Positions 2,958 to 28,857 are shown, counted from the first letter of the stretch. The stretch: DNA of 39,016 nt from Octopus bimaculoides (GCF_001194135.2 NC_069001.1:748607-787622); one strand, 5' to 3'. Numbers and translations are program-made. The notes: a model not told the origin generated them from the letters alone.

Positions 2958-3107
<150 letters not shown>

Positions 3108-5228
3108 TTAATGAGATGGTGACAGAAAAAAAAAAGAATATATATACACATATACACATACATGCAAACACACACATATACACACATAAAGCAAATCAAA
3201 TTTAGAAACATAACAGCAAGTTCAAAAAATGTTCACAGTTAATATTAAATTGACACTCAACGAAGGAAGAAAGTTATAGAATAAAAGTCATCAAGAATAC
3301 TATTCATATCATAATTATCAAATATAACTTTTCTCTCTAAAATTTTAGACTTTATTTCCCCAATAAAACACCAGCAGAAAATGTTACAAGCTTTTATGGT
3401 TTCTTTCATAAAAAAAAAATTTAGTAAAAATTTATATTTAAATATCACATCTGTTTACATAACAAGTAGAAGACACTAATTAATTGAAAGTAGTTGAAGA
3501 AATTAATTGGGCATTAATTGCCACTTGCTTTATTTTTAAAGTAGCAGCAAAAATCTTCAATCCAAAATGGAAAATGGTCATGTTTAAGGAACATAATAAT
3601 AACAATAATAATAATAATAATTTTTACTAATATAAAGCACAAGGCTAATAATTTTCATGTGAAAGGGTTAATCTGTACGAGCAACCCCAGCACTTGACTT
3701 GTACTTTATTTTGTCAATTGCAATAGGATGGAAGTGAAGATGCATAGCCTACTCATGATTGCAAGGTCACGGTCTCAATTCTTGGACCAGGTGGTGTGTT
3801 GAGATTTTGGGCAAAACACTTCATTTTACATTGGTCCACTTCACTCAGCTGTAAACAAGTGACCCTGTGATGGATCAGTGTCCCATTCTGGAGGGGGGGT
3901 GATCTCAGTCACTTATAGGCTATGGGAAAATGGGCAACTGCCCATATGAGTCTTAGGACACAAGACAGCAATGTCCAGGGTTTGACAACGATGACGAAAG
4001 GGTGAAAGGCAAAGTTGACTTCAGCAAGGTTTGATCTCAAAAACCTCACGAGCTTCAAGAAATATTCCAAAGCAACTTTTTTTTTTTTTTTTAGTATTTC
4101 TTGTAGCTCTTTACATTCTGAGTTCAAATCCCACTGAAGTCATCCTTTCAGGGCCGATAAAATAAAGTACCAGTCAAGTACTGCTGGCCTTGTGCCTAAA
4201 CTAGACTCTAAGAACATGACAGTAATAACGAGAAAGACAACTAATTCATCTCTAAAATTTCTCTTGGATAATTAAAATGACTTCATAATTCCTAAAATAA
4301 AAATAATAATAAATAAAAACAGAAAATAAAGGAACGGGTGAAAAAACAAAAATAAATTTTAGTTTTAGACATACACAAAATCAACAGCAATCCTGAGAAC
4401 ACACAGAAAGTGATTAATTCAACTGGAAAAAAAAAACTGACAAATAAAATAACTGAAAGTTATAAAGTCACAGATTAATTATGAAATTGAAATATTGAGT
4501 AGCAGTTGATTTGATCTGATGATGTATGTGAGTGATCATATTGATCTGATACAATAGTGTTTGTTATGCATCAAAACTATTGATCATCTTGGCTGTTGTT
4601 TTGAGAGAAGCCATCTTCTCAACCAAATCTTATTTCACAAAAACGAAAAACAAAAAAAAAAAAATGTCTTTTCTTACAACAAACTGTTGTGTCTTGTCAC
4701 AGGTTAATTAATGGTGTCTCATAACAGGTAGTCTGCCCCCTAATAAACAATATTGTTTCTTTGTGCTGGACAGGTTGACAAGTGAACTAATCATCATCCA
4801 AAGGACTTTGCTCAAAGGACTCTGGTTTTCCCATTTTCCAACAAATATAAAATAGTAGAAGCTACAATCACACACACACACACACACCAATGTATAAGAG
4901 GCACTCTTGGATAAGATGCATCCTATTTTCTAAATATATTTTGTGGAACAAAACTGGTTTTGTAAGAGGAAAATGTATGATTCTGTGCAACAGTTTACTG
5001 GAATAAAGAATGAAACCATAAATTTATCTAACAAAGAGCCTGCACTATGGCACCATCTATCCATCCATCCATTCTCACAGCTCGCTATTCCTGTAAGCCC
5101 CATCAGAAGCAACTGTCATAAGCTTTAGTTTTAGATTTTAATTAAAACACAAACACTTCAGCACATGCAATGTCAGGCAGGTTTGTCTCAAAATGGTTTT
5201 GAAGGGAGGATGAAATAAGAAGTTACAG

Positions 5229-5883
5229 NNNNNNNNNNNNNNNNNNNNNNNNNNNNNNNNNNNNNNNNNNNNNNNNNNNNNNNNNNNNNNNNNNNNNNNN
5301 NNNNNNNNNNNNNNNNNNNNNNNNNNNNNNNNNNNNNNNNNNNNNNNNNNNNNNNNNNNNNNNNNNNNNNNNNNNNNNNNNNNNNNNNNNNNNNNNNNNN
5401 NNNNNNNNNNNNNNNNNNNNNNNNNNNNNNNNNNNNNNNNNNNNNNNNNNNNNNNNNNNNNNNNNNNNNNNNNNNNNNNNNNNNNNNNNNNNNNNNNNNN
5501 NNNNNNNNNNNNNNNNNNNNNNNNNNNNNNNNNNNNNNNNNNNNNNNNNNNNNNNNNNNNNNNNNNNNNNNNNNNNNNNNNNNNNNNNNNNNNNNNNNNN
5601 NNNNNNNNNNNNNNNNNNNNNNNNNNNNNNNNNNNNNNNNNNNNNNNNNNNNNNNNNNNNNNNNNNNNNNNNNNNNNNNNNNNNNNNNNNNNNNNNNNNN
5701 NNNNNNNNNNNNNNNNNNNNNNNNNNNNNNNNNNNNNNNNNNNNNNNNNNNNNNNNNNNNNNNNNNNNNNNNNNNNNNNNNNNNNNNNNNNNNNNNNNNN
5801 NNNNNNNNNNNNNNNNNNNNNNNNNNNNNNNNNNNNNNNNNNNNNNNNNNNNNNNNNNNNNNNNNNNNNNNNNNNNNNNNNNN
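5229..5883. other. Assembly gap (N run)
   Basis: 655 N, flanked by (TG)n on the right. Confidence 1.
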
Positions 5884-5944
<61 letters not shown>

Positions 5945-6714
5945 CATTAGATGTATAACTGCTACAGATAAGTTTAGAGCTGAACAGATTATCCTAATCC
6001 AGCCTGCTTCCAGTACATTGATTAAGTAACCACTAAGCATTACTGGTTATGATATCCTGGGTAAATGTAGGAGGGAATGTGATAAACACAAGTTTGTTCC
6101 CCTACATATGTTTCACCATTGTGGTTGTTTGGAACCCTGCATTGGTAATTCAAAATGTATTTGGATGTTTAACCACGAGGGAACTTCAAGGGGAACACTT
6201 TATTGCATTGCATTACAGACAACTAATGTGCGCATGTTTCTGTCTCCTTATCTTAACATCATCTGATGGCTATAAACAAGCATTACAGCAGAGCAATGCT
6301 GTTTACTTCCAGTCTTCCATGAAAGACATGTCTGGTCAAGAGCATATATTTCCTTGTTTGGAAACAGTTGAGGGTCGGTGACAGGGAGTGCATCCAGCTG
6401 TAGAAAAATTACAACAAACTCCAGTCCAACCCACGCAAGCATGGGAAATTGGACATTATGATGATGATGATGTTTATAATAACGATATATATCAAATTCT
6501 CTAAAACTTCCAAAAAAACCAAAAAAACAACTGTTTATTTATCTAAGGAGAGGTCACCAATAAAACCTCATTTCAAGGCTATTTAATACTTTGTGACTAT
6601 TGCTTTGGCTCACTGGGCTGGCTGGCTGGTATCTGGTTACCCACATACACAAAGCAGTGAGGAAAGAAACAAATATAACAATACGTAAAATAGTTAAACG
6701 TGGAGATGCGTGGC

Positions 6715-6970
6715 TTAGGGGTGAGGGTGTTGCATTCATGATTGTAAGATTGTGATTTTAATTCCTGGACCAAGCAATGTGTTGTGTTTTTGAGCAAAAC
6801 ACATTGTTTCACATTACTCCAGTTCACTCAGCTGACAAAAAGGGAGTCATCCTGCAATGGGCTGGTGTCCCATCCAGGGGGACTATATTATATATGCCAC
6901 AGAATCTGGGAAACCAGCCGTGTAAGTGTACAGCTCATGAAGGACCTTGCAGCATCTTTTTTTAAAACAG
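6715..6970 (+). mobile_element. Second SINE family (ttcctggacc...gcaaaacac...cactcagctg core)
   Basis: Similar copies at about 3755-3960(+), 26740-26900(-) and 33830-34020(-). Boundaries approximate. Confidence 0.6.
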
Positions 6971-7136
6971 TTACACAGGTGTGGCTTTATGGCTTTATGG
7001 CTAGGTAGCTTGCTTTTCAACCACAAGCTTTTGGGTTCAGTCCCTCTGCACAGCTGAGCAAGGGTATTGGGATACAGTTCCAAGATGACAAATGACTGAG
7101 TCAATTTGGGAAGCAGAAACTGTGTAGAAGCTGTGT

Positions 7137-7167
<31 letters not shown>

Positions 7168-7550
7168 AAGTGGTTGGCATTAGGAAGGACATCAGGCCAC
7201 AGAAAGCAGACTCTGGAGCATGATGCAGTTCCTGGACCCAACGAACCATGCCAAACCATCCAACTCATATCAGTGTGGAACATGGACATGTGTGTCGTTG
7301 TGCTTGTTTTCACTTCACTGATGCTTAACAGATGGTGTTGGTTTCTTTACATCCCTGAAACACAACAGTTTGGCAAAGCGGGTGGGAGGCAGCAGAATAT
7401 GTATCAGGCTTAAAAGAATAAGAAGAAGAAAAAAAGAAAATATTGGCATCGATTTGTTCTACTAAAATCTTGAGGCAATGCTCCAGCATGGCCGTAAGTA
7501 AAATATAAAAGAACCATACACGTTAGCAGAAATATTTACTTTACACTGCA

Positions 7551-7581
<31 letters not shown>

Positions 7582-8309
7582 TATTATTATTATAATTATT
7601 ATCATTATTATTACTTGATATTAATGTTTAAACAGTTGTTAATATTATTAGGGAAGTATCAGACAATAAACTACATAGAAGTATTTTTAGTTAAGGGCTC
7701 TTCCCTTTCTGTTCAAATCCCACAAGGTCGAACCTGTCTTTCCTCCTTTAGGAGTTTGGTAAAATGAAGTTATGCGAATCAGAAGAAAAGATAGATTCCT
7801 TTGCTGACCAAATAAAGTAGCAATCAAATAGTATCTGTGATTGTACTGAAGCTGACCCCTGCCCTTTACCCTGCAAAATATGTAGGCCTTCTAAGACCAG
7901 TGTTAGGGGTGTATTTCAGGTATTCAAGTCAGTCATGTGAGAGTGTTAAATCAAGGATCAAAATGGGACAAAGGGAATATTTTGGGAACCTAAATTAATA
8001 TCTTCATGAAAAATATATAACACACAGAGCCCTATATATATAAGGTGCAGAGGTGGCCATGTGATAAGAAGCTTTCTTCCCAACCACATGGTTCCACTGG
8101 GTGGCACCTTAAGCAAGTATCTTCTACCATAAACTCTGGATCAACCAAGCCTTGGGAGAGGATTTGGGAGAGAAAAACTGAAAGAAGCTTGTCACATATT
8201 ATGCATGTGTGTGTCCTTGTGTTTCTCTCTCTACCCCACCCCCCTTGAGAACTGGTATTGGTTTGTTTACATCCCCATAACTTAATGATTCAACAAAAGA
8301 GACTGATAG

Positions 8310-8848
8310 ACTCGGAAAGTTTGTGAAGAACTGATTGACCCAATTTGCTGACTTTTCTGATGGCATGCAGGTGTCGATAAATGGTTGAATGACCAAATCC
8401 AAGCTTTTCTGGTAGTTCCTCAACAGTTATGATGGAATTTTGTACCACCAGAGGTTTGCAGGATGTCCTCGTTGAGCTCTACAGATCTTCCAAGACAAGG
8501 ATTGTCTTCTAGGCTGTAGTTTCTGGTTTGGAAATTCTGGAACCACCGTTGACACTGGCTTATGCGCATTGTCCGATTCCCATATACTGCATTCATACTT
8601 TCCGTCCCTTTGTTGCCTTTAACTCATAAAGCAAAATATGGCAAATATGTTCCTTTGTCACTTCCATTATAGCTTTGAAAAAGCAACTGTTACAATCGAA
8701 CTGCACTCTGCAAACTTGCACTTAGAATAAGGTAAAATTACTGCCTGCTTTTATAGCAAGTTGATGCAGGTGGTTTATCCTGTCCCGCTCCAACTTTTAG
8801 CTAATGCAATTGAAAAAAATCGCATTATGTATGGAATGACCTGATGTA
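8310..8848 (-). mobile_element. Degenerate mariner transposon, 5' part
   Basis: Frameshifted translation MEVTKEHICHILLYELK...NAVYGNRT...QCQRWFQNF...SLEDNPCLGRSVELNEDIL / VEELPEKLGFGHSTIYRHLHAIRKVSKLG matches a mariner HTH region. TIR-like end at about 8812-8848. Confidence 0.85.
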
Positions 8849-10229
8849 TGCATGTATGTTATATATATGTATGTATGTATGTATGCTATATATATATGTA
8901 TGTATATAGACATGCATACACACTGATATCGAAAAGTGTCTGAATGAAATGAATGAAAATTAAACTAATTCCTTAAAAACCAGACAAGGTAAATAACAAC
9001 TGATAAAAAAACTAAAAAATTTAATTAAAATCTTGCTTAATCAATTTTCTCAGTGTAAATCTACAGAACAAGAATTGTATTAACAGAATACAATTTTCCA
9101 TATTTATGGAAGCGAACTTGTATGGCCTTTTGATTTGACAATCTCTCTCTCTCTCTCCCTCCATCTTTCTCACTCACACCCACATCCACATGCAACCTTC
9201 TTTGTATTAAATCCATAATGAAACAAAAGTGTTAAATGAATGCAATTTATGAAAGGTGACTGCAAGACAACATTCAAGCCATGGTGCCAAATATTTGGTG
9301 ATTGGAGAGAATCATAAAATAATTCTTCAAGAGCCAGAGAACTTTAAACAGCAAAGATAAACCATTAGAACAGAAAAATAGTCCAACTAAATACAAAAAC
9401 AAGTTTTGAAATTTAATACAAAAAAGAAAGTAACAAAAATAATAATTAAAAAACAAAAAGGCAGCTGAAACTGACTCGTCACGCCAAAATGGATGCAAAT
9501 GTGTGAATTGTGTGTGAAAAACTCATTCTCCAAAAACCAAACAAACATGAAGCTCACAAGAGAAGTGACAAACTTGGATATTAGAAGACATTTATATAGA
9601 ACTCAAGACCAAAACTTATTCCATTGATATAAGAATACCTAATATTGAGAAGGTCGGTTACTTAGTATTAGACAAGATTCCACAACATTTCTGTTTCTAC
9701 TATATTGTCCGGCATTATAAGACAATTTTTAGAGAGCAAAATTTACAGCCAAAACAAGTAGGTCGACATAGACACCAAGACAACTTTGGAGGGCCAAAAT
9801 TTCTATGTGAAATGCAGCAGGATTTCGAAAGATAGAGATGATGTTCAAACATTTACACTTAAATACTATGTCAGCTTGCATGCCGGAAAATATGGTAAAT
9901 ATCTGAGGCAAGTTCTTTTTATTCTTTAATATTTTAGAATTTTGTTGGTAAGATTGCAAATTTCTTGGAAAACTTTATTTTCAGAGATGAAACATATTTT
10001 ACAAGCATCTCTCTCATGCTACGGAAGAGTTGCCTTCCCAAATAATCTTGCCATGTTATAAAATTCCATAAATCAAAATCTATTTTTCCATTGGATAAGA
10101 AAGTTAATGTTATGGAATTTGGTGTTACAGCAAGATTTTCCAGAACACAACACTTTTGAAACATGGGAGTTGTAAGTAAAATACATCTACACTATGTTTC
10201 AATCAGCTTCATCTATTATCATCATCACA

Positions 10230-10690
10230 AGTCTATTAACTCTGTCTAATCCTCTCCTCTCTCCATATTCTCTCTGAGAGTCAAATTCTTGCACCTTGAA
10301 GGTACACCCTTACACCCCATCTCTTTTCTCTCCACCCAGGTAGGGGTCACCATGTATTTCCCCTAAAATAAAACACTCGTTTCTCTCCTTCAGTCATACT
10401 TTAACCTCTGAACACCTGGCCCAAAGCCACCTCCCAGAATACAACAGTCCCACTCAGTCGAGGGGTTCCCTGTCTTGTGAGATACTTAGGGACTTCACTA
10501 GTGCCAATGCCACATAAAAAGTACCTAGCACAGTCTGTGCTTTGGCTGGTGTTAGGAAGAAGGGAATCCAGCTGTAGAAACCATGCCAAAGTAGACACAG
10601 GAGCTTGATGCAGTTCCCTGGCCCATCAAATCTTATCAAACAGTCCAACCCTGCCAGTATGGAAGATGGACATTAAATGATAATGGTGAT
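10230..10690 (+). mobile_element. Retroposon 3' end with (TGA)n tail (SINE/LINE-shared tail)
   Basis: The catccagctgtagaaa...ccatgccagcatgg...ttaaatgatgat tail recurs at about 6380-6475, 15180-15330, 19200-19450, 22260-22465 and 31090-31170, and inverted at about 760-1070, 14345-14480, 17795-17900 and 20145-20290. Confidence 0.65.
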
Positions 10691-10692
10691 AC

Positions 10693-10755
<63 letters not shown>

Positions 10756-11168
10756 AACACACACATAGATATATATATGTGTGTGTGTGTACGTATGGTG
10801 GTCCCATACTGAATTTAAATTATAAACCTTTATTTCTAAACCAAGAGAAAGGTTACTGATACACCACAATCCTTAGAAATAACAACTCCAGAGGCTGCAT
10901 TCAAACTTGGAGAATAAAACATTTGATGATGATTAGAGATGAAAACCAACTGAAACTTAGTGAAGTTATCAATATTGGGGACAAAAAAATATTTTGTCTT
11001 CTAAGATGAGAAGAAATTGAAAACTTTAGAATAATCTAATATCTGTCTCCATTATCCAAATTTATCAAACCTTCCATGGCTTGTTTGTTTTTTTTTGTTG
11101 TTGTCTGGTTTTGGTCGTTGTTGTTGTTGTTGTTATTATTATTATTATTATTATTTCTGCTTCGTTCT

Positions 11169-11681
11169 CTAACATTCATTACAGACCTTACTATGCGGAA
11201 GTTGCAACTTTAAGTTTTTAGCATTCTTTTTGTCTACGATAGACTGCTGTACTTTCTGCCCGTCAGTATTGCTGTCGGCGGGGCATGCTTGTGGACCGCT
11301 CTCGCTGCTTTCCGAGCTGTTACAAGGAACGGTGGTACACGTCTCCTTGGGAACGTTACACTGATTGTTTTGTAAGCCGACACGATGGTCGGCAGCGTTT
11401 TTGCACTGAGTGACGGGGACTGTCGGAGCTGACATTCTCGCCTGCCTTTTAGCACGTGCTTTTGTCATGGTCAGTGTTGTTGTTGTAGTTGTTGTTGTGT
11501 TGGTGTTGGTGTGGTTGAAATGCACGGGGTTCTTGTTGCTAGGTAAGGGAATGGCAGTCATTGGGCATTTAGTTTGGAATGGTGAGGGTGCGTTGAGACG
11601 AGTATTCCGAGATGGACTTAGATACCCCTTACGTCGGAGGATTGCTTTAAACAATTTCGCTTCGTTCCTGTGGATGGGTGG
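11169..11681 (-). CDS. Candidate alternative terminal exon of PKN (PPIHRNEAKLFKAILRRKGYLSP...KVCNEC*, 170 aa)
   Basis: Acceptor aatttccatttcag in phase 0, matching the donor of exon 14041-14260. 513 nt open to TAG; GC/CpG-rich relative to the intron; N-terminus resembles the [16 protein letters not shown] exon. Confidence 0.62.
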   Translation of the reverse strand, partial: PPIHRNEAKLFKAILRRKGYLSPSRNTRLNAPSPFQTKCPMTAIPLPSNKNPVHFNHTNTNTTTTTTTTLTMTKARAKRQARMSAPTVPVTQCKNAADHRVGLQNNQCNVPKETCTTVPCNSSESSESGPQACPADSNTDGQKVQQSIVDKKNAKNLKLQLPHSKVCNEC

Positions 11682-12439
11682 CTGAAATGGAAATTACTGG
11701 AAATGAAAAGAAAAAATAAACACTAATAACGCAACACAGTTATTAATTGGCAAATTAACTAATGAGATTTTTAATCTAATTTAGATCAGATATTATTTAA
11801 TTAGCACTAATTTGAGATGGAGAAGAGCAACAGGAATTACACCAACTAATTAGGTAACATAGTTGTCCATTAAGTTACACGTCTCCTCCTGAACATATGT
11901 GTATTGTTGGAAAGTCAGAAGCTGCAGCTTGTTTGTGATTGAGACCACAACACTTCCTCTGGAACAGAACACAAGTCCATTGCAGGGTTAACTTTCCAGC
12001 TATTGTTCCACCCCATTCACAGCTGAGTGGGGGTGGGGCCACACGAAATGAAGAGTTTTGCTCAAGAACACAACACACCACCCACTTCAGGAATTGAAAG
12101 CACAGTCTTACAATCATTAGCACAACACCTTCGCCACTGGGCCATACACTTTCACTGATTAATGAAAAGAAAGGAAAAAAAAACCTGCATGTGATGAATG
12201 ACCTCCTAAAGATAAACTGATTAGCAAATTAATTTCATTAAAAGTTCACATCTCTGTTTCACAATTTGCCCCTTCCATTACAATCAGTCGACCATGTGAC
12301 CCAGTTTCAAAAAACATTTTTTTAAAAATTTTCATTTGGTTTCATATAGAATGCTATGTGGCAGCCATTGGTGTGGTGCTTATAGAGTTAGACAGATGGT
12401 AACAGTGCCTTCATGTAGTTAGCATTTTACCATTTTTTA

Positions 12440-12620
12440 AAAAACATTTTTTTTTTTTCCAGTTACAAATCATGGTTCAACCTGGTGCATATTGTGTGTT
12501 TGCTGTGGAAGTGTTTGTCAATCTATAAAATGTGGGATCATTTTGGCCGCACCTTGAACTTTGAAACCGTGCTGATGACTAAGAGAATCTGAATGAAGAA
12601 GGAATCAAAAGGGTCCACAG
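12440..12620 (+). mobile_element. Possible Tc1/mariner-superfamily 5' remnant
   Basis: ttttccagttacaaatcATGGTTCAACC...GTGTTTGCTGTGGAAGTG resembles the start of Tc1-like transposases (MV...FAVE.F); short and broken. Confidence 0.3.
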
Positions 12621-13260
12621 ATAATAAAATAAAAAAAAGAGGGGGCTGGGAAACATTGGTTTAGATGAACAAATTAGTCCCAACATTTATTTTATTAAAG
12701 TCTAGTACTTATTCTATCAGCCTCTTTTGCTGAACAGCTAAGCTATAGGGATGTAAACAAGCTAACACCAGTTATCAAGTGGTGGATGGAACACACACAT
12801 GACAGGCTTTCACACAGTTTCCATCTACCAAATACTGAGAATTAAGATTTTGTTCGTTATTATTATTATTATCATTATTATTACTATTAGTGGTAAGTGA
12901 TGTAGGGGGTAAGATACATTCCAAATGGGGAAGGTCTAAGGTCAAGTATTTGGTCTGTCCTATTTAAACAACCTTGAGAAAAGCATGAACACCACACATA
13001 TTCGTTTATTTCTTTCATAAATTCAAGGCCTCCATCAGTCTAATATAAGAAATCAAATGTTCATTTGCCTGTCCTATAAATGTGATGCTGTTTCAAGCTT
13101 GTTTCATATCAATGTGGTTCTAACTGAAGCTAAACTGTTTTAGTAGTTTTACTACAGAAGGAAAGAAAAAAGAAAAAAAAAAGAACCAAACGATGTCTTT
13201 GTTACTTAGTGACTAAAACTACATTATGAAACTTCATGCAAGCCAAAAAAAAATAAATAA

Positions 13261-13296
<36 letters not shown>

Positions 13297-13971
13297 CATG
13301 ATAGTAATTAAATATAATAAAAATTTAACATGTTTTTCTTCTTCATTATATATATCTATATATAAATTATGACCAGCTTTCCATTTTGGATAAAAAAAAA
13401 AATACACATGAAATCCTGAAGTTTTGACAATGTGGAATATAAAAAAAAATCAAACCTGGAAAATAAAAGCTTAAAACAAATCTTTTTGTTTTCTTTAAAG
13501 ATTAAAAAAAAGACATTAATGATGACATTCAAGTTTGTAGTCCGCACACAAAAACACGTTTTGACGTTCTCAGCGAAGATTATAAAATTGATAATAGGCC
13601 AAGGGAGGTAACTTCTGCATAAACTCATTTCTACGTAAAATGGGTCTTCCATATGCTAATTTTGTCCGTGACATTCGCTATTATTGGCTAATTTTAATCC
13701 AGACGATCTCTTCTACCGAGCCTGACTCTGTAAAATGTCAGTAATACATGGTAACATTTTGTGCTCTTGCTAAGGTACTTTTACCAGATTTTCTAATGTA
13801 AAGCTACATTACTTTAAATATTATACAGCTTAATGTACTAAACACATTTTACTTGAATAATTGCTGCTGAAATCAGGGTACATCTCTAATATGCCTGTGT
13901 ATCTTTTATGCTACCAAATATGGTGCATAGTTTCATAACACAATATGTTGAAGTCATTTACTCAAAATTTA

Positions 13972-14325
<354 letters not shown>

Positions 14326-14579: not shown

Positions 14580-15161
14580 GGATCTTTTTTAAAACGGGGG
14601 CCACATTTTTCATTAATGTTTTACGTAGTGTTTTTGGTACGGAAAGACTTTCAAACTTCGTATACTTATCTATTTTGTGTTATAGAACAGAAAAATATTT
14701 TTGTATTCGAATTTATTTCATGTAAAAAATTGTCTTATTTCGATAATTTCAACCAATCACTGACAAGTATTCAGTTGTTTACATTTACTCCTTTGGCTGA
14801 TTAAGTGATGTAAAGCGTATTTAATCTCCATACCTTCGTTTTATTTGCTTTTTTCATTTTAAATTTGCTTTAACCCTAACCCTACGGTTAGGGTTAGGGT
14901 TAGGGTTAGGGTTAGTGTTAATTGTTTCAGAATCGTTTGTTTATGTAGTCGGCACTTAATGTATATCGGCTGAATGGACGTCAGTGATTGGTTGAAATTA
15001 CAGAAATACGACAACTTTCACATGGAATAACTTATGGATTTCTTTTTTTTTTTAAGAAGACTTACAGAAAAAGATGTTTTATATGACACATTCTACCAGT
15101 GTTCCAAGTTTCAAAGTGTTTCGTTAATGAAAAATGTGGCCCCCCGTTTTAAAAAAGATCC
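14580..15161. mobile_element. Non-autonomous foldback DNA transposon (MITE), about 40-bp TIRs starting GG, 8-bp TSD aaacattc; Merlin- or hAT-like
   Basis: ggatcttttttaaaacgggggccacatttttcattaa is inverted at both ends; aaacattc at 14572-14579 and 15162-15169; internal inverted blocks such as tttcaaccaatcactgac. Confidence 0.88.
14871..14915. repeat. Interstitial telomere-type repeat: (TAACCC)2 followed by GG(TTAGGG)4TTAG
   Basis: Read directly; lies at the midpoint of the 14580-15161 element. Confidence 0.9.
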
Positions 15162-27980: not shown

Positions 27981-28470
27981 NAGTGTCAGATATATTCGTA
28001 GGTTTCTTTCCAATGTTATTTAAATTAACACAAAAGATACTTTAATTGCAATATTTTTTTTTGTTTTTTATAGTTTGTTTTTGTAGCTCTATTCTTTCTC
28101 TACAACTTTAGGTTTTGAAATTTGAATAAATTTTACCTCTTTTTCAGTCATATGATGACAGAATGCCAAATGGAGGTGGGGGGGAGACAGAAAGGAAACA
28201 AGCATTTTGATCCCAAAGCTGTCAAAGACACTCAAGACATTTGTGTTGTGTGTGGAGAAGCAATGACTGAAAGAACTACACAAAAATGGTTTCCAAGTTT
28301 CAAAACAGGAAAATTCGACTTCACAGATTTGGCATCTTGCCAGCTCATTCAGTTCAACGCAGATCGATTGAATAAGTTCATCTGCAGGGATCTATGTCAG
28401 TTCACTAGGGACTTGGTCCAGCAGATGGGATCCTCTCACAAGACCACTGCCTGTGCACAGTCAATGCACC
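27981..28470 (+). mobile_element. Degenerate mariner transposon, 5' part
   Basis: ORF 28122-28613 contains DICVVCGEAMTERTTQKWFPSFKTGKFDFTDL...FNADRLNKFI...TRDLVQQMGSSHKT, a mariner DNA-binding domain; no DD34D region seen. Confidence 0.85.
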
Positions 28471-28857
28471 AGCTTAACAAGGCCATCCAGCTGAAACAAG
28501 CCAAAATGGCAACATTGCATATTTCTCTCCAATGCAACAAGGCTGCCTCCCACCACCACCACCGCCCACTCTACCCGAACCACATCACTAATTTGACCAA
28601 AAATACTATTTGAGAAATTGCCTTCAGATTATTAACTTTCTGATCACTTTCTGGTGATTTGTTGAACAACAATGAAAACTGAGAATGTGGCTCAGTGAAT
28701 CTGAGTCAAAGCAGTAATAAGTTAGTAGAATGTTGACAAGAAGGTCTTGAACAATGAAGGAGAATATGTCATTGGATTGATTTGTTAAAATCATTAATGA
28801 AAAATAAGGATTAAAATGAATTAGGTGGGTGGACTCTGAATTTATCTGACAACTCAA

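Follow-up and report, generated by a model that had tools for sequence, protein, structure and literature searches.

Does a long open reading frame (ORF) buried in an intron of a kinase gene supply that gene with an alternative ending, or does it encode a segment that is spliced into the middle of the protein? The question arises in a window of Octopus bimaculoides DNA (NC_069001.1:748607-787622), by which we mean the whole stretch of 39,016 nucleotides that was analysed, with positions counted from its first letter. Of a PKN-type AGC kinase gene on the minus strand, the window contains the 3' half. An initial annotation pointed out that an 11-kb intron of this gene holds a strong phase-0 acceptor followed by 170 open codons to a TAG, and took the stretch for a hidden alternative last exon, born by duplication of the exon encoding helix alphaG, that would exchange the kinase's C-terminus. 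The sequence is as described (minus strand, 11681..11169, 170 codons plus TAG), and both the acceptor and its phase are used in RNA of three sequencing runs. The exon seen in RNA nevertheless stops short of the TAG and continues into the next kinase exon. The region is very probably a lineage-restricted, alternatively spliced coding cassette exon (11681..11187, minus strand) of the PKN-type gene.

The sequencing runs, coded X1, X2 and so on, come from the species of the window (lineage A) and from related lineages B and C. The elements on which the argument turns are these:

14260..14041, minus strand: PKN exon d, the upstream constitutive exon (RDLKLDN...MLVGE), from the catalytic loop to helix alphaF; its 3' end reads GGAGAG/gtatgg at 14041.
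11187..11681, minus strand: in-frame PKN cassette exon, 495 nt, 165 codons, phase 0 at both ends, encoding PPIHRNEAKLFKAILRRKGYLSPS...NLKLQLPHSK; seen in X3 and X12 contigs.
11181..11186, minus strand: 5' splice site of the cassette, AAG/gtctgt at 11187/11186, with a non-consensus C at +3; X3 and X12 contigs leave the genome at 11187.
11169..11186, minus strand: read-through codons VCNEC and TAG, which fall in the intron once the cassette is spliced; raw reads give zero depth over 11160-11181.
3080..2973, minus strand: PKN exon e, the downstream constitutive exon (SPFPGDD...), encoding the canonical alphaG.

Sequence of the exon is present in many RNA-type runs of lineage A and in some of B and C. 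A 553-nt contig of X3 (lineage A) begins with 28 nt of exon d (...GTATTGATATACGAAATGCTGGTCGGAG), passes through positions 11683..11187 and closes with 28 nt from the start of exon e (TCTCCATTCCCTGGGGATGATGAAGAAG); since two nucleotides, AG, are common to both sides at the acceptor, the junctions are 14041 to 11681 and 11187 to 3080. When aligned to exon d, this contig also overlaps 14041-14070. The same succession of exon d, cassette and exon e is found in X12, a run labelled organism B, with an exon of 498 nt. A lineage A run from a separate study, X7, shows a 330-nt alternative branch at 14041, whose merged loose-end consensus is that of X3, and in X13 (organism C) a contig stops at the same acceptor position (11683), where an 11-nt overhang could not be read. 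Acceptor 11681, in the context ...taatttccatttcag/CCACCC with its tttcag end, is the one used by the contigs of X3, X7 and X12. The junction from 14041 to 11681 was thus found where it was looked for, and the hidden alternative PKN exon exists. It is an internal in-frame cassette exon and not a terminal one: its donor, 18 nt ahead of the TAG of the 170-codon ORF, is spliced to the SPFPGDD exon in X3 and X12, which leaves the last five codons, the TAG and a downstream AATAAA in the intron. Exon e is joined to exon d as well as to the cassette, and the two forms occur together in the same samples (X3, X7).

Inclusion was assessed by comparing the depth of the cassette contig with that of the canonical d-e junction contig or of the exon d contig:

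X3: cassette 8.07, canonical junction 110.2, about 7% inclusion.
X7: cassette 5.66, canonical branch 27.9, about 17% inclusion.
X12: cassette 10.5, exon d contig 155.5, 6-7% inclusion.
X13: cassette 3.9, exon d contig 153.5, 2.5% inclusion.

The cassette form is a consistent minor isoform, representing about 2.5-17% of junctions. Three deep raw-read runs, sampled at about 6% of reads, gave a cassette depth of about 1-5, excluding its low-complexity core, and about 30-50 over exon d; in round terms, about 2 against about 30-40. Only depths were usable from the read layout of 11160-14300, as microsatellite cross-mapping (12857-12889, 13260-13324) flooded the joint tables. RNA reads pile up to great depth, by the hundreds to thousands and with numerous variants and loose ends, on three intronic patches (12000-12104, 12630-12944 and 13260-13364). 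These are (TTA)n and (AAT)n microsatellites, probably together with a repeat family expressed elsewhere, and reflect cross-mapping rather than local expression. The (ACA/ACC)n run at 11468-11517, which encodes a poly-Thr run of the cassette, cross-maps too, reaching depths of thousands in X19 and hundreds in RNA runs, and depth and variant calls are unreliable there.

The open frame of the cassette exceeds what chance would produce. Frame 0 contains no stop, against 6 and 11 in the remaining sense frames; upon shuffling of the 495 exon bases it stays open in 0.07% of trials (p = 7e-4), to be multiplied by a chance of 1/3 for a length divisible by 3. What goes beyond chance is that an exon defined by RNA has a length divisible by 3 and no stop in the phase that its flanking exons impose. 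ORF length alone proves nothing, since the window contains two other ORFs of 163 amino acids. The richness in GC and CpG noticed earlier is real: the spliced cassette has a GC content of 0.489 and a CpG observed/expected ratio of 0.97, compared with 0.349 and 0.25 for the intron and 0.431 and 0.67 for the canonical PKN exons. The encoded residues include 21 T, 16 P, 16 N, 13 S and 6 C, and the basic character attributed to the start is confirmed both there (PPIHRNEAKLFKAILRR) and over the whole cassette (24 K+R versus 8 D+E).

The frame is also kept in other lineages, all of them close relatives (no more than about 4.5% divergence). The X12 exon, rebuilt from its listed differences, is open, with 21 substitutions and three inserted bases near 11591-11594; about 14 positions of its insert protein differ, in addition to an indel (NA to DTT). 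In X19, a DNA-like run, a contig is collinear over 11160-11800 and presents eight resolved exon substitutions, the resolved part being open; the net gain of 3 nt in this run was not located and may lie in 11468-11517. X12 and X19 are both labelled organism B, yet they differ from the window at 21 and 8 exon positions of which only 4 are shared, and the label seems to cover two distinct lineages. Substitutions are unevenly placed along the exon. Its 5' 90 nt have none in either X12 or X19, where about 3.8 would be expected in X12, and its last 68 nt have a single synonymous change. The conserved 5' end could be due to signals for splicing, to the function of the protein, or to both. What the analysis does show is where the exon begins and ends, its frame, the skipped form alongside, splicing of the exon in two lineages or more, a frame that is open in three lineages, and no detectable homologue in the searches made.

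What would the cassette do to the kinase? Inclusion through 11681 and 11187 would insert 165 residues in frame between ...MLVGE, at the end of alphaF, and SPFPGDD, in the loop leading into alphaG. The upstream junction of the product reads ...MLVGEPPIHR, its downstream end LQLPHSK, and it includes the QACPADSNTDGQK region. The loss of subdomain XI and of the C-tail, from which a kinase-dead form had been deduced, does not apply to this main product: the insert isoform would keep the catalytic motifs, helices alphaG to alphaI, the subdomain XI Arg, the turn motif and the hydrophobic-motif tail. The insert itself would comprise a basic, amphipathic, alphaG-like segment, PPIHRNEAKLFKAILRR, followed by a basic stretch (net +16) of about 140 residues, rich in Thr, Pro, Asn and Ser and predicted to be disordered. 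The segment in question is as follows:

11631..11681, minus strand: first 17 codons of the cassette, basic alphaG-like segment PPIHRNEAKLFKAILRR, from the Pkinase profile, alignments to PDB structures and a helix in AlphaFold2.

Resemblance of this segment to alphaG is supported at the level of the profile, in a small test. The protein truncated at MLVGE scores 194.8 bits against the Pkinase profile (PF00069), with a match that goes as far as profile position 194; adding the cassette raises the score to 203.3 bits (+8.5) and carries the match across PPIHRNEAKLFKAILRR up to position 212. When the first 25 residues of the cassette are shuffled instead (10 composition-matched versions), the scores are 195.5-198.1 bits, 5-8 bits lower, and no match goes beyond position 200. 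Likewise, phmmer alignments to the structures of SGK1, S6K1 and Akt1 extend 15-24 residues into the cassette. The alignment with alphaG put forward at the outset therefore stands for the profile and fails in pairwise comparison, where it is not significant (p = 0.15). Alignments to human PKN2 (4CRS) and PKN1 (4OTD) split exactly at the insertion point, GE/SPFPGDD. For the 502-residue insert isoform, supplied with an alignment of 120 homologues, AlphaFold2 returned a predicted template modelling score (pTM) of 0.70, a predicted local distance difference test (pLDDT) above 90 for the kinase core and C-tail, and the canonical alphaG in place (residues 380-389). A helix is predicted with low confidence in the insert at residues 212-224 (pLDDT 54-61), and residues 231-370, with a pLDDT of about 27, are predicted to be disordered.

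The insertion point is in what we take to be the alphaF-alphaG loop, equivalent to Tyr235-Pro-Pro-Phe238 of PKA. The surface made of this loop and alphaG is a docking site for regulators and substrates, and the insert would form a surface loop on the C-lobe beside it. Since the two ends of the loop are adjacent, a long basic disordered loop should be sterically tolerable. We infer that the insert most likely leaves the fold in being and acts instead on the docking of partners or substrates, on localisation or on regulation.

A number of observations weigh against a functional cassette. Inclusion is low in all runs examined, and the insert isoform is known from RNA and sequence only. The sole junction evidence among raw reads, in X22, uses another acceptor, at 11696, which introduces a stop, and not 11681. 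The preference of AlphaFold2 for the canonical alphaG is expected, since no alignment row covers the insert, and is no test. Homology searches are negative as well: neither the 170-residue ORF nor the 165-residue cassette has any match in a word-index search of 5.8 billion proteins or in a full HMMER scan of 1.84 billion representatives, no Pfam family matches, and none of the 120 closest PKN homologues returned (0/120) has any residue between ...GE and SPFPG. The word-index search seems to list only proteins shorter than about 1.75 times the query (up to 195 residues for a query of 111, up to 589 for one of 337), and the representative library merges proteins at 50% identity, so that an annotated full-length isoform could be missed and the cassette is not established as unannotated. 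With the exon d+e peptide as query, the matches were all ORF fragments confined to one exon, none of them a cephalopod isoform, and P0117 is an intron read-through ORF from a relative. Run X41 of organism D was too diverged: its alignment to exon d was limited to short patches.

Signs of selection at the protein level are weak. By the Nei-Gojobori method, the comparison of lineage A with X12 yields a ratio of nonsynonymous to synonymous rates (omega, dN/dS) of 0.67 (dN 0.038, dS 0.057), from 14 nonsynonymous and 6 synonymous changes, which is not significantly below 1 (p = 0.29); with X19, where 4 changes are synonymous and 4 nonsynonymous, omega is 0.29. The synonymous rate of the cassette (0.057) is near that of exon d (0.043). 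Of the expected conservation of the ORF with a dN/dS below 1, the first part was found, with a frame open in X12 and in the resolved part of X19; for the second, both values of omega lie below 1 and come from few sites. Because omega is not significantly below 1, survival of the ORF over about 4% divergence is weak evidence for selection. Judged from these changes, most of the cassette is evolving near the neutral rate, and this weak constraint would suit a disordered module that is young and changing fast, but equally an isoform that is close to neutral.

One rival explanation is that the exon is non-functional, a product of exonisation or splicing noise: two splice sites that happen to occur within a large intron would be used at low level, exposing a young accidental ORF with no selected role. 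Inclusion at 2.5-17%, an exon middle that evolves at about the synonymous rate, the lack of homologues in protein searches, the weak donor gtctgt and a rival acceptor giving an immediate stop are all in keeping with it. Noise does not readily provide a frame of 165 codons open in the right phase, with a probability of about 7e-4 and a further 1/3 for length, nor a GC and CpG content that is exon-like and not intron-like. It also sits uneasily with splicing in at least two lineages and indels that are both net +3 nt, with first 90 nt free of substitutions in two diverged lineages against the 3.8 or so expected in X12, and with a start that fits the kinase alphaG profile. We consider noise possible, if on the whole rather unlikely, and prefer the coding cassette.

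The rival acceptor raises another question, that of a poison exon, and calls for two more features:

11682..11696, minus strand: 15-nt extension through the upstream 3' splice site, ttccag/TAATTTCC, of which the first codon is an in-frame TAA.
11697..11720, minus strand: polypyrimidine tract and AG of the upstream acceptor, tttattttttcttttcatttccag, a longer tract than that of 11681.

Two 3' splice sites (ttccag/TAA... and tttcag/CCA...) thus lie 15 nt apart, and the choice between them is one between the insert isoform and an immediate stop. In X22, five raw reads match up to position 11698 and then the reverse complement of the end of exon d (...GTATTGATATACGAAATGCTGGTCGGAG), which, given a 2-nt ambiguity, corresponds to a junction from 14041 to 11696; translated in phase 0, this yields ...MLVGE and a stop. 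The X19 contig has no substitution at 11682-11729. The 11681 junction has no raw read in the sample of about 6%, and the 11696 junction has no contig. Use of 11696 would turn inclusion into a premature stop, and the MLVGE-ended product would probably be degraded or non-functional. With the cassette donor used thereafter, several exon junctions would lie downstream of the stop, making the transcript a candidate for nonsense-mediated decay (NMD). Rules of NMD differ in invertebrates. The escape from NMD once foreseen for the locus does not carry over: a form ended at MLVGE comes, on paper, from 11696, and its stop precedes further exon junctions when the cassette donor is used.

Should the relevant outcome be the 11696 form, the exon would serve regulated unproductive splicing, in which the TAA lowers PKN output through NMD or gives the MLVGE-ended protein. 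The only raw-read junctions, five in X22, do take 11696, which has the stronger polypyrimidine tract and an in-frame TAA; the assembled contigs of X3, X7 and X12, however, take 11681, which introduces no stop, and if the exon were purely a poison one, nothing would explain why the 165 codons that follow remain open with in-frame indels. Such a role is therefore unlikely as the main one, and the productive cassette remains our preferred reading.

A structural variant of the cassette reading is that PPIHRNEAKLFKAILRR acts as a second alphaG of opposite charge (the canonical one is acidic), tied to alphaF by the native short PP(I/F) loop, and could compete with or displace the canonical helix. 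The disordered linker of about 140 residues would let the chain return to alphaH. Such an alphaG swap would amount to a splicing switch of electrostatics at the main docking surface of the PKN C-lobe. We know of no precedent for an intramolecular alphaG swap among AGC kinases, and regard this arrangement as quite improbable.

There remains the terminal exon from which the question started, in which 14041 would be joined to 11681, the donor ignored, and the transcript polyadenylated after a hexamer located beyond the TAG at 11171-11169, yielding a PKN without subdomain XI and C-tail:

10829..10834, minus strand: AATAAA hexamer, proposed poly(A) signal, intronic in the spliced form and with no sign of use found.

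The hexamer is indeed present where it had been reported; the 3' ends predicted near 10800 were not seen in the reads and contigs examined. Raw reads of X21 and X22 (about 6% of reads) have zero depth at 11160-11181 and 10795-10990 while covering the cassette itself, and no poly(A) loose ends were reported. Contigs collinear past the donor occur only in X1 and X2, both of study P1: X1 has 11127-11680 and 10840-11010, and X2 has 10795-11150, a contig that passes collinearly through AATAAA without ending. Since X2 also carries unspliced intron contigs (13668-14042, 11478-11717), read-through in study P1 looks like pre-mRNA background, which is no proof that a terminal form is absent. An alternative last exon, for which the X1 contigs crossing the donor (11127..11680) and spanning 10840-11010 and the presence of AATAAA can be cited, is highly improbable in view of the donor use in X3 and X12, the zero depths in X21 and X22, the X2 contig running through AATAAA in a study that holds pre-mRNA-like contigs, and the want of reported poly(A) loose ends.

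Two origins of the cassette were considered and set aside. A dispersed repeat or transposon does not agree with its flat single-copy depth of 23.8 in X19, which is that of the flanks except at 11468-11517, and no Pfam or protein match, transposon proteins included, was obtained; a repeat had been named beforehand as what would overturn the exon, and on checking it was not there. Tandem duplication of exon e gives a best local BLOSUM62 score of 19 (shuffle p = 0.15), a value equalled or exceeded by 17 of 130 other cassette windows. As the cassette and the alphaG exon, compared pairwise, are no more alike than chance would make them, the duplication initially proposed is not demonstrated.

The exons of the host gene were mapped by tblastn, with a PKN2 kinase-domain sequence serving as a probe only, and by inspection of splice sites. 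In addition to exons d and e, the window contains the following:

16391-16212, minus strand: PKN exon b, from tblastn and splice sites.
15685-15534, minus strand: PKN exon c, from tblastn and splice sites.
2358-2278, minus strand: PKN exon f, from tblastn and splice sites.
1738-1679, minus strand: PKN exon g, from tblastn and splice sites.
535-392, minus strand: PKN exon h, with ...FVANWC and then a stop.

The canonical product assembled from these exons has 337 residues and matches Pkinase with 220 bits and Pkinase_C with 57 bits; its best solved relatives are human PKN2 (4CRS, E = 9e-171) and PKN1 (4OTD, E = 7e-165). Judged by its kinase domain and AGC C-tail, the host gene is a member of the PKN (PRK) subfamily of AGC kinases. 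The cassette lies within the d-e intron (14040..3081), whose length of 10,960 nt is an assembly estimate, since a run of N (an assembly gap) flanked by (TG)n occurs inside it at about 5300-5880. In many other animals, ORF fragments continue from MGFGDRT... through MLVGESPFPGDD to ...IMRR across the 14041/3080 boundary, so these genomes seem to be without an intron there, and the cassette's 11-kb host intron may be peculiar to its lineage. Elsewhere in the gene, the c-d intron has a head-to-head telomere-type repeat at 14873-14920, (CCCTAA)2 followed by (GGTTAG/TTAGGG)x5. On the plus strand, a 163-residue ORF at 28122-28613 has a weak match to HTH_48, the helix-turn-helix (HTH) of Mos1/mariner transposase (22.5 bits, just under the 24.1-bit cut-off), and probably represents the decayed remains of a mariner-like element, located in a PKN intron further upstream.

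Spliced or inserted segments are known in other kinases. ERK1b, a minor isoform of ERK1 (1-10% of ERK), has a 26-residue in-frame insertion from intron 7 in the common docking motif (PMC8699841). Both cases involve a spliced in-frame insertion in the docking region of a kinase C-lobe, in a minor and lineage-restricted form that retains the catalytic residues; the ERK1b insertion measures 26 residues and is a retained intron, whereas that of the AGC kinase PKN measures 165, would sit between alphaF and alphaG, comes from a discrete cassette deep in an 11-kb intron, and has a putative function only. In JNK, the region encoded by exons 6a/6b lies between subdomains IX and X. These alternative exons change substrate binding (PMC8699841). 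Here too splicing alters a C-lobe docking region, and the cassette starts with an alternative, differently charged alphaG-like segment. The JNK exons, in contrast, are mutually exclusive and change 5-7 residues, while the alphaG-like segment of PKN would stand in tandem with a canonical alphaG that is kept, and homology of the cassette to the canonical exon is not demonstrable.

Among AGC kinases, inserts include the T-loop insertion of more than 500 residues in MASTL/Greatwall and 15-residue inserts in MAST1-4 (PMC12732324). As in MASTL, a long non-conserved segment interrupts an intact AGC catalytic domain, and the PKN insert is predicted to be disordered; the MASTL and MAST inserts are constitutive and belong to the DFG-APE activation segment, whereas the PKN insert is optional, falls between alphaF and alphaG, and occurs in a few close species as tested. 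Human PKN2 and PKN1 (4CRS, 4OTD) align end to end over the flanking exons and have no residue at the insertion junction. For human PKN1, a cryptic exon repressed by TDP-43, PKN1-5a1, is reported (PMC13035944); it resembles the present case as a hidden exon of a PKN-family gene that yields a novel peptide, and differs in its intron, in the region of the gene concerned and in arising from disease-activated cryptic splicing. A literature search found no paper on a kinase-domain insert in PKN or on PKN splicing in cephalopods.

The isoform that emerges is not a tail-less, kinase-dead PKN: it would be a PKN with an intact catalytic core and C-tail and a large optional loop beside the alphaG surface. 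With a productive acceptor and one leading to a stop only 15 nt from each other, the pair would form a simple switch between the insert isoform and an unproductive one. If functional, the cassette would be an unusually large spliced insertion at a place that is empty of residues in all 120 of the closest PKN homologues examined, and a lineage-specific exon that adds a disordered module to a deeply conserved kinase. If nearly neutral, it would be a clean example of a young exon between noise and function.

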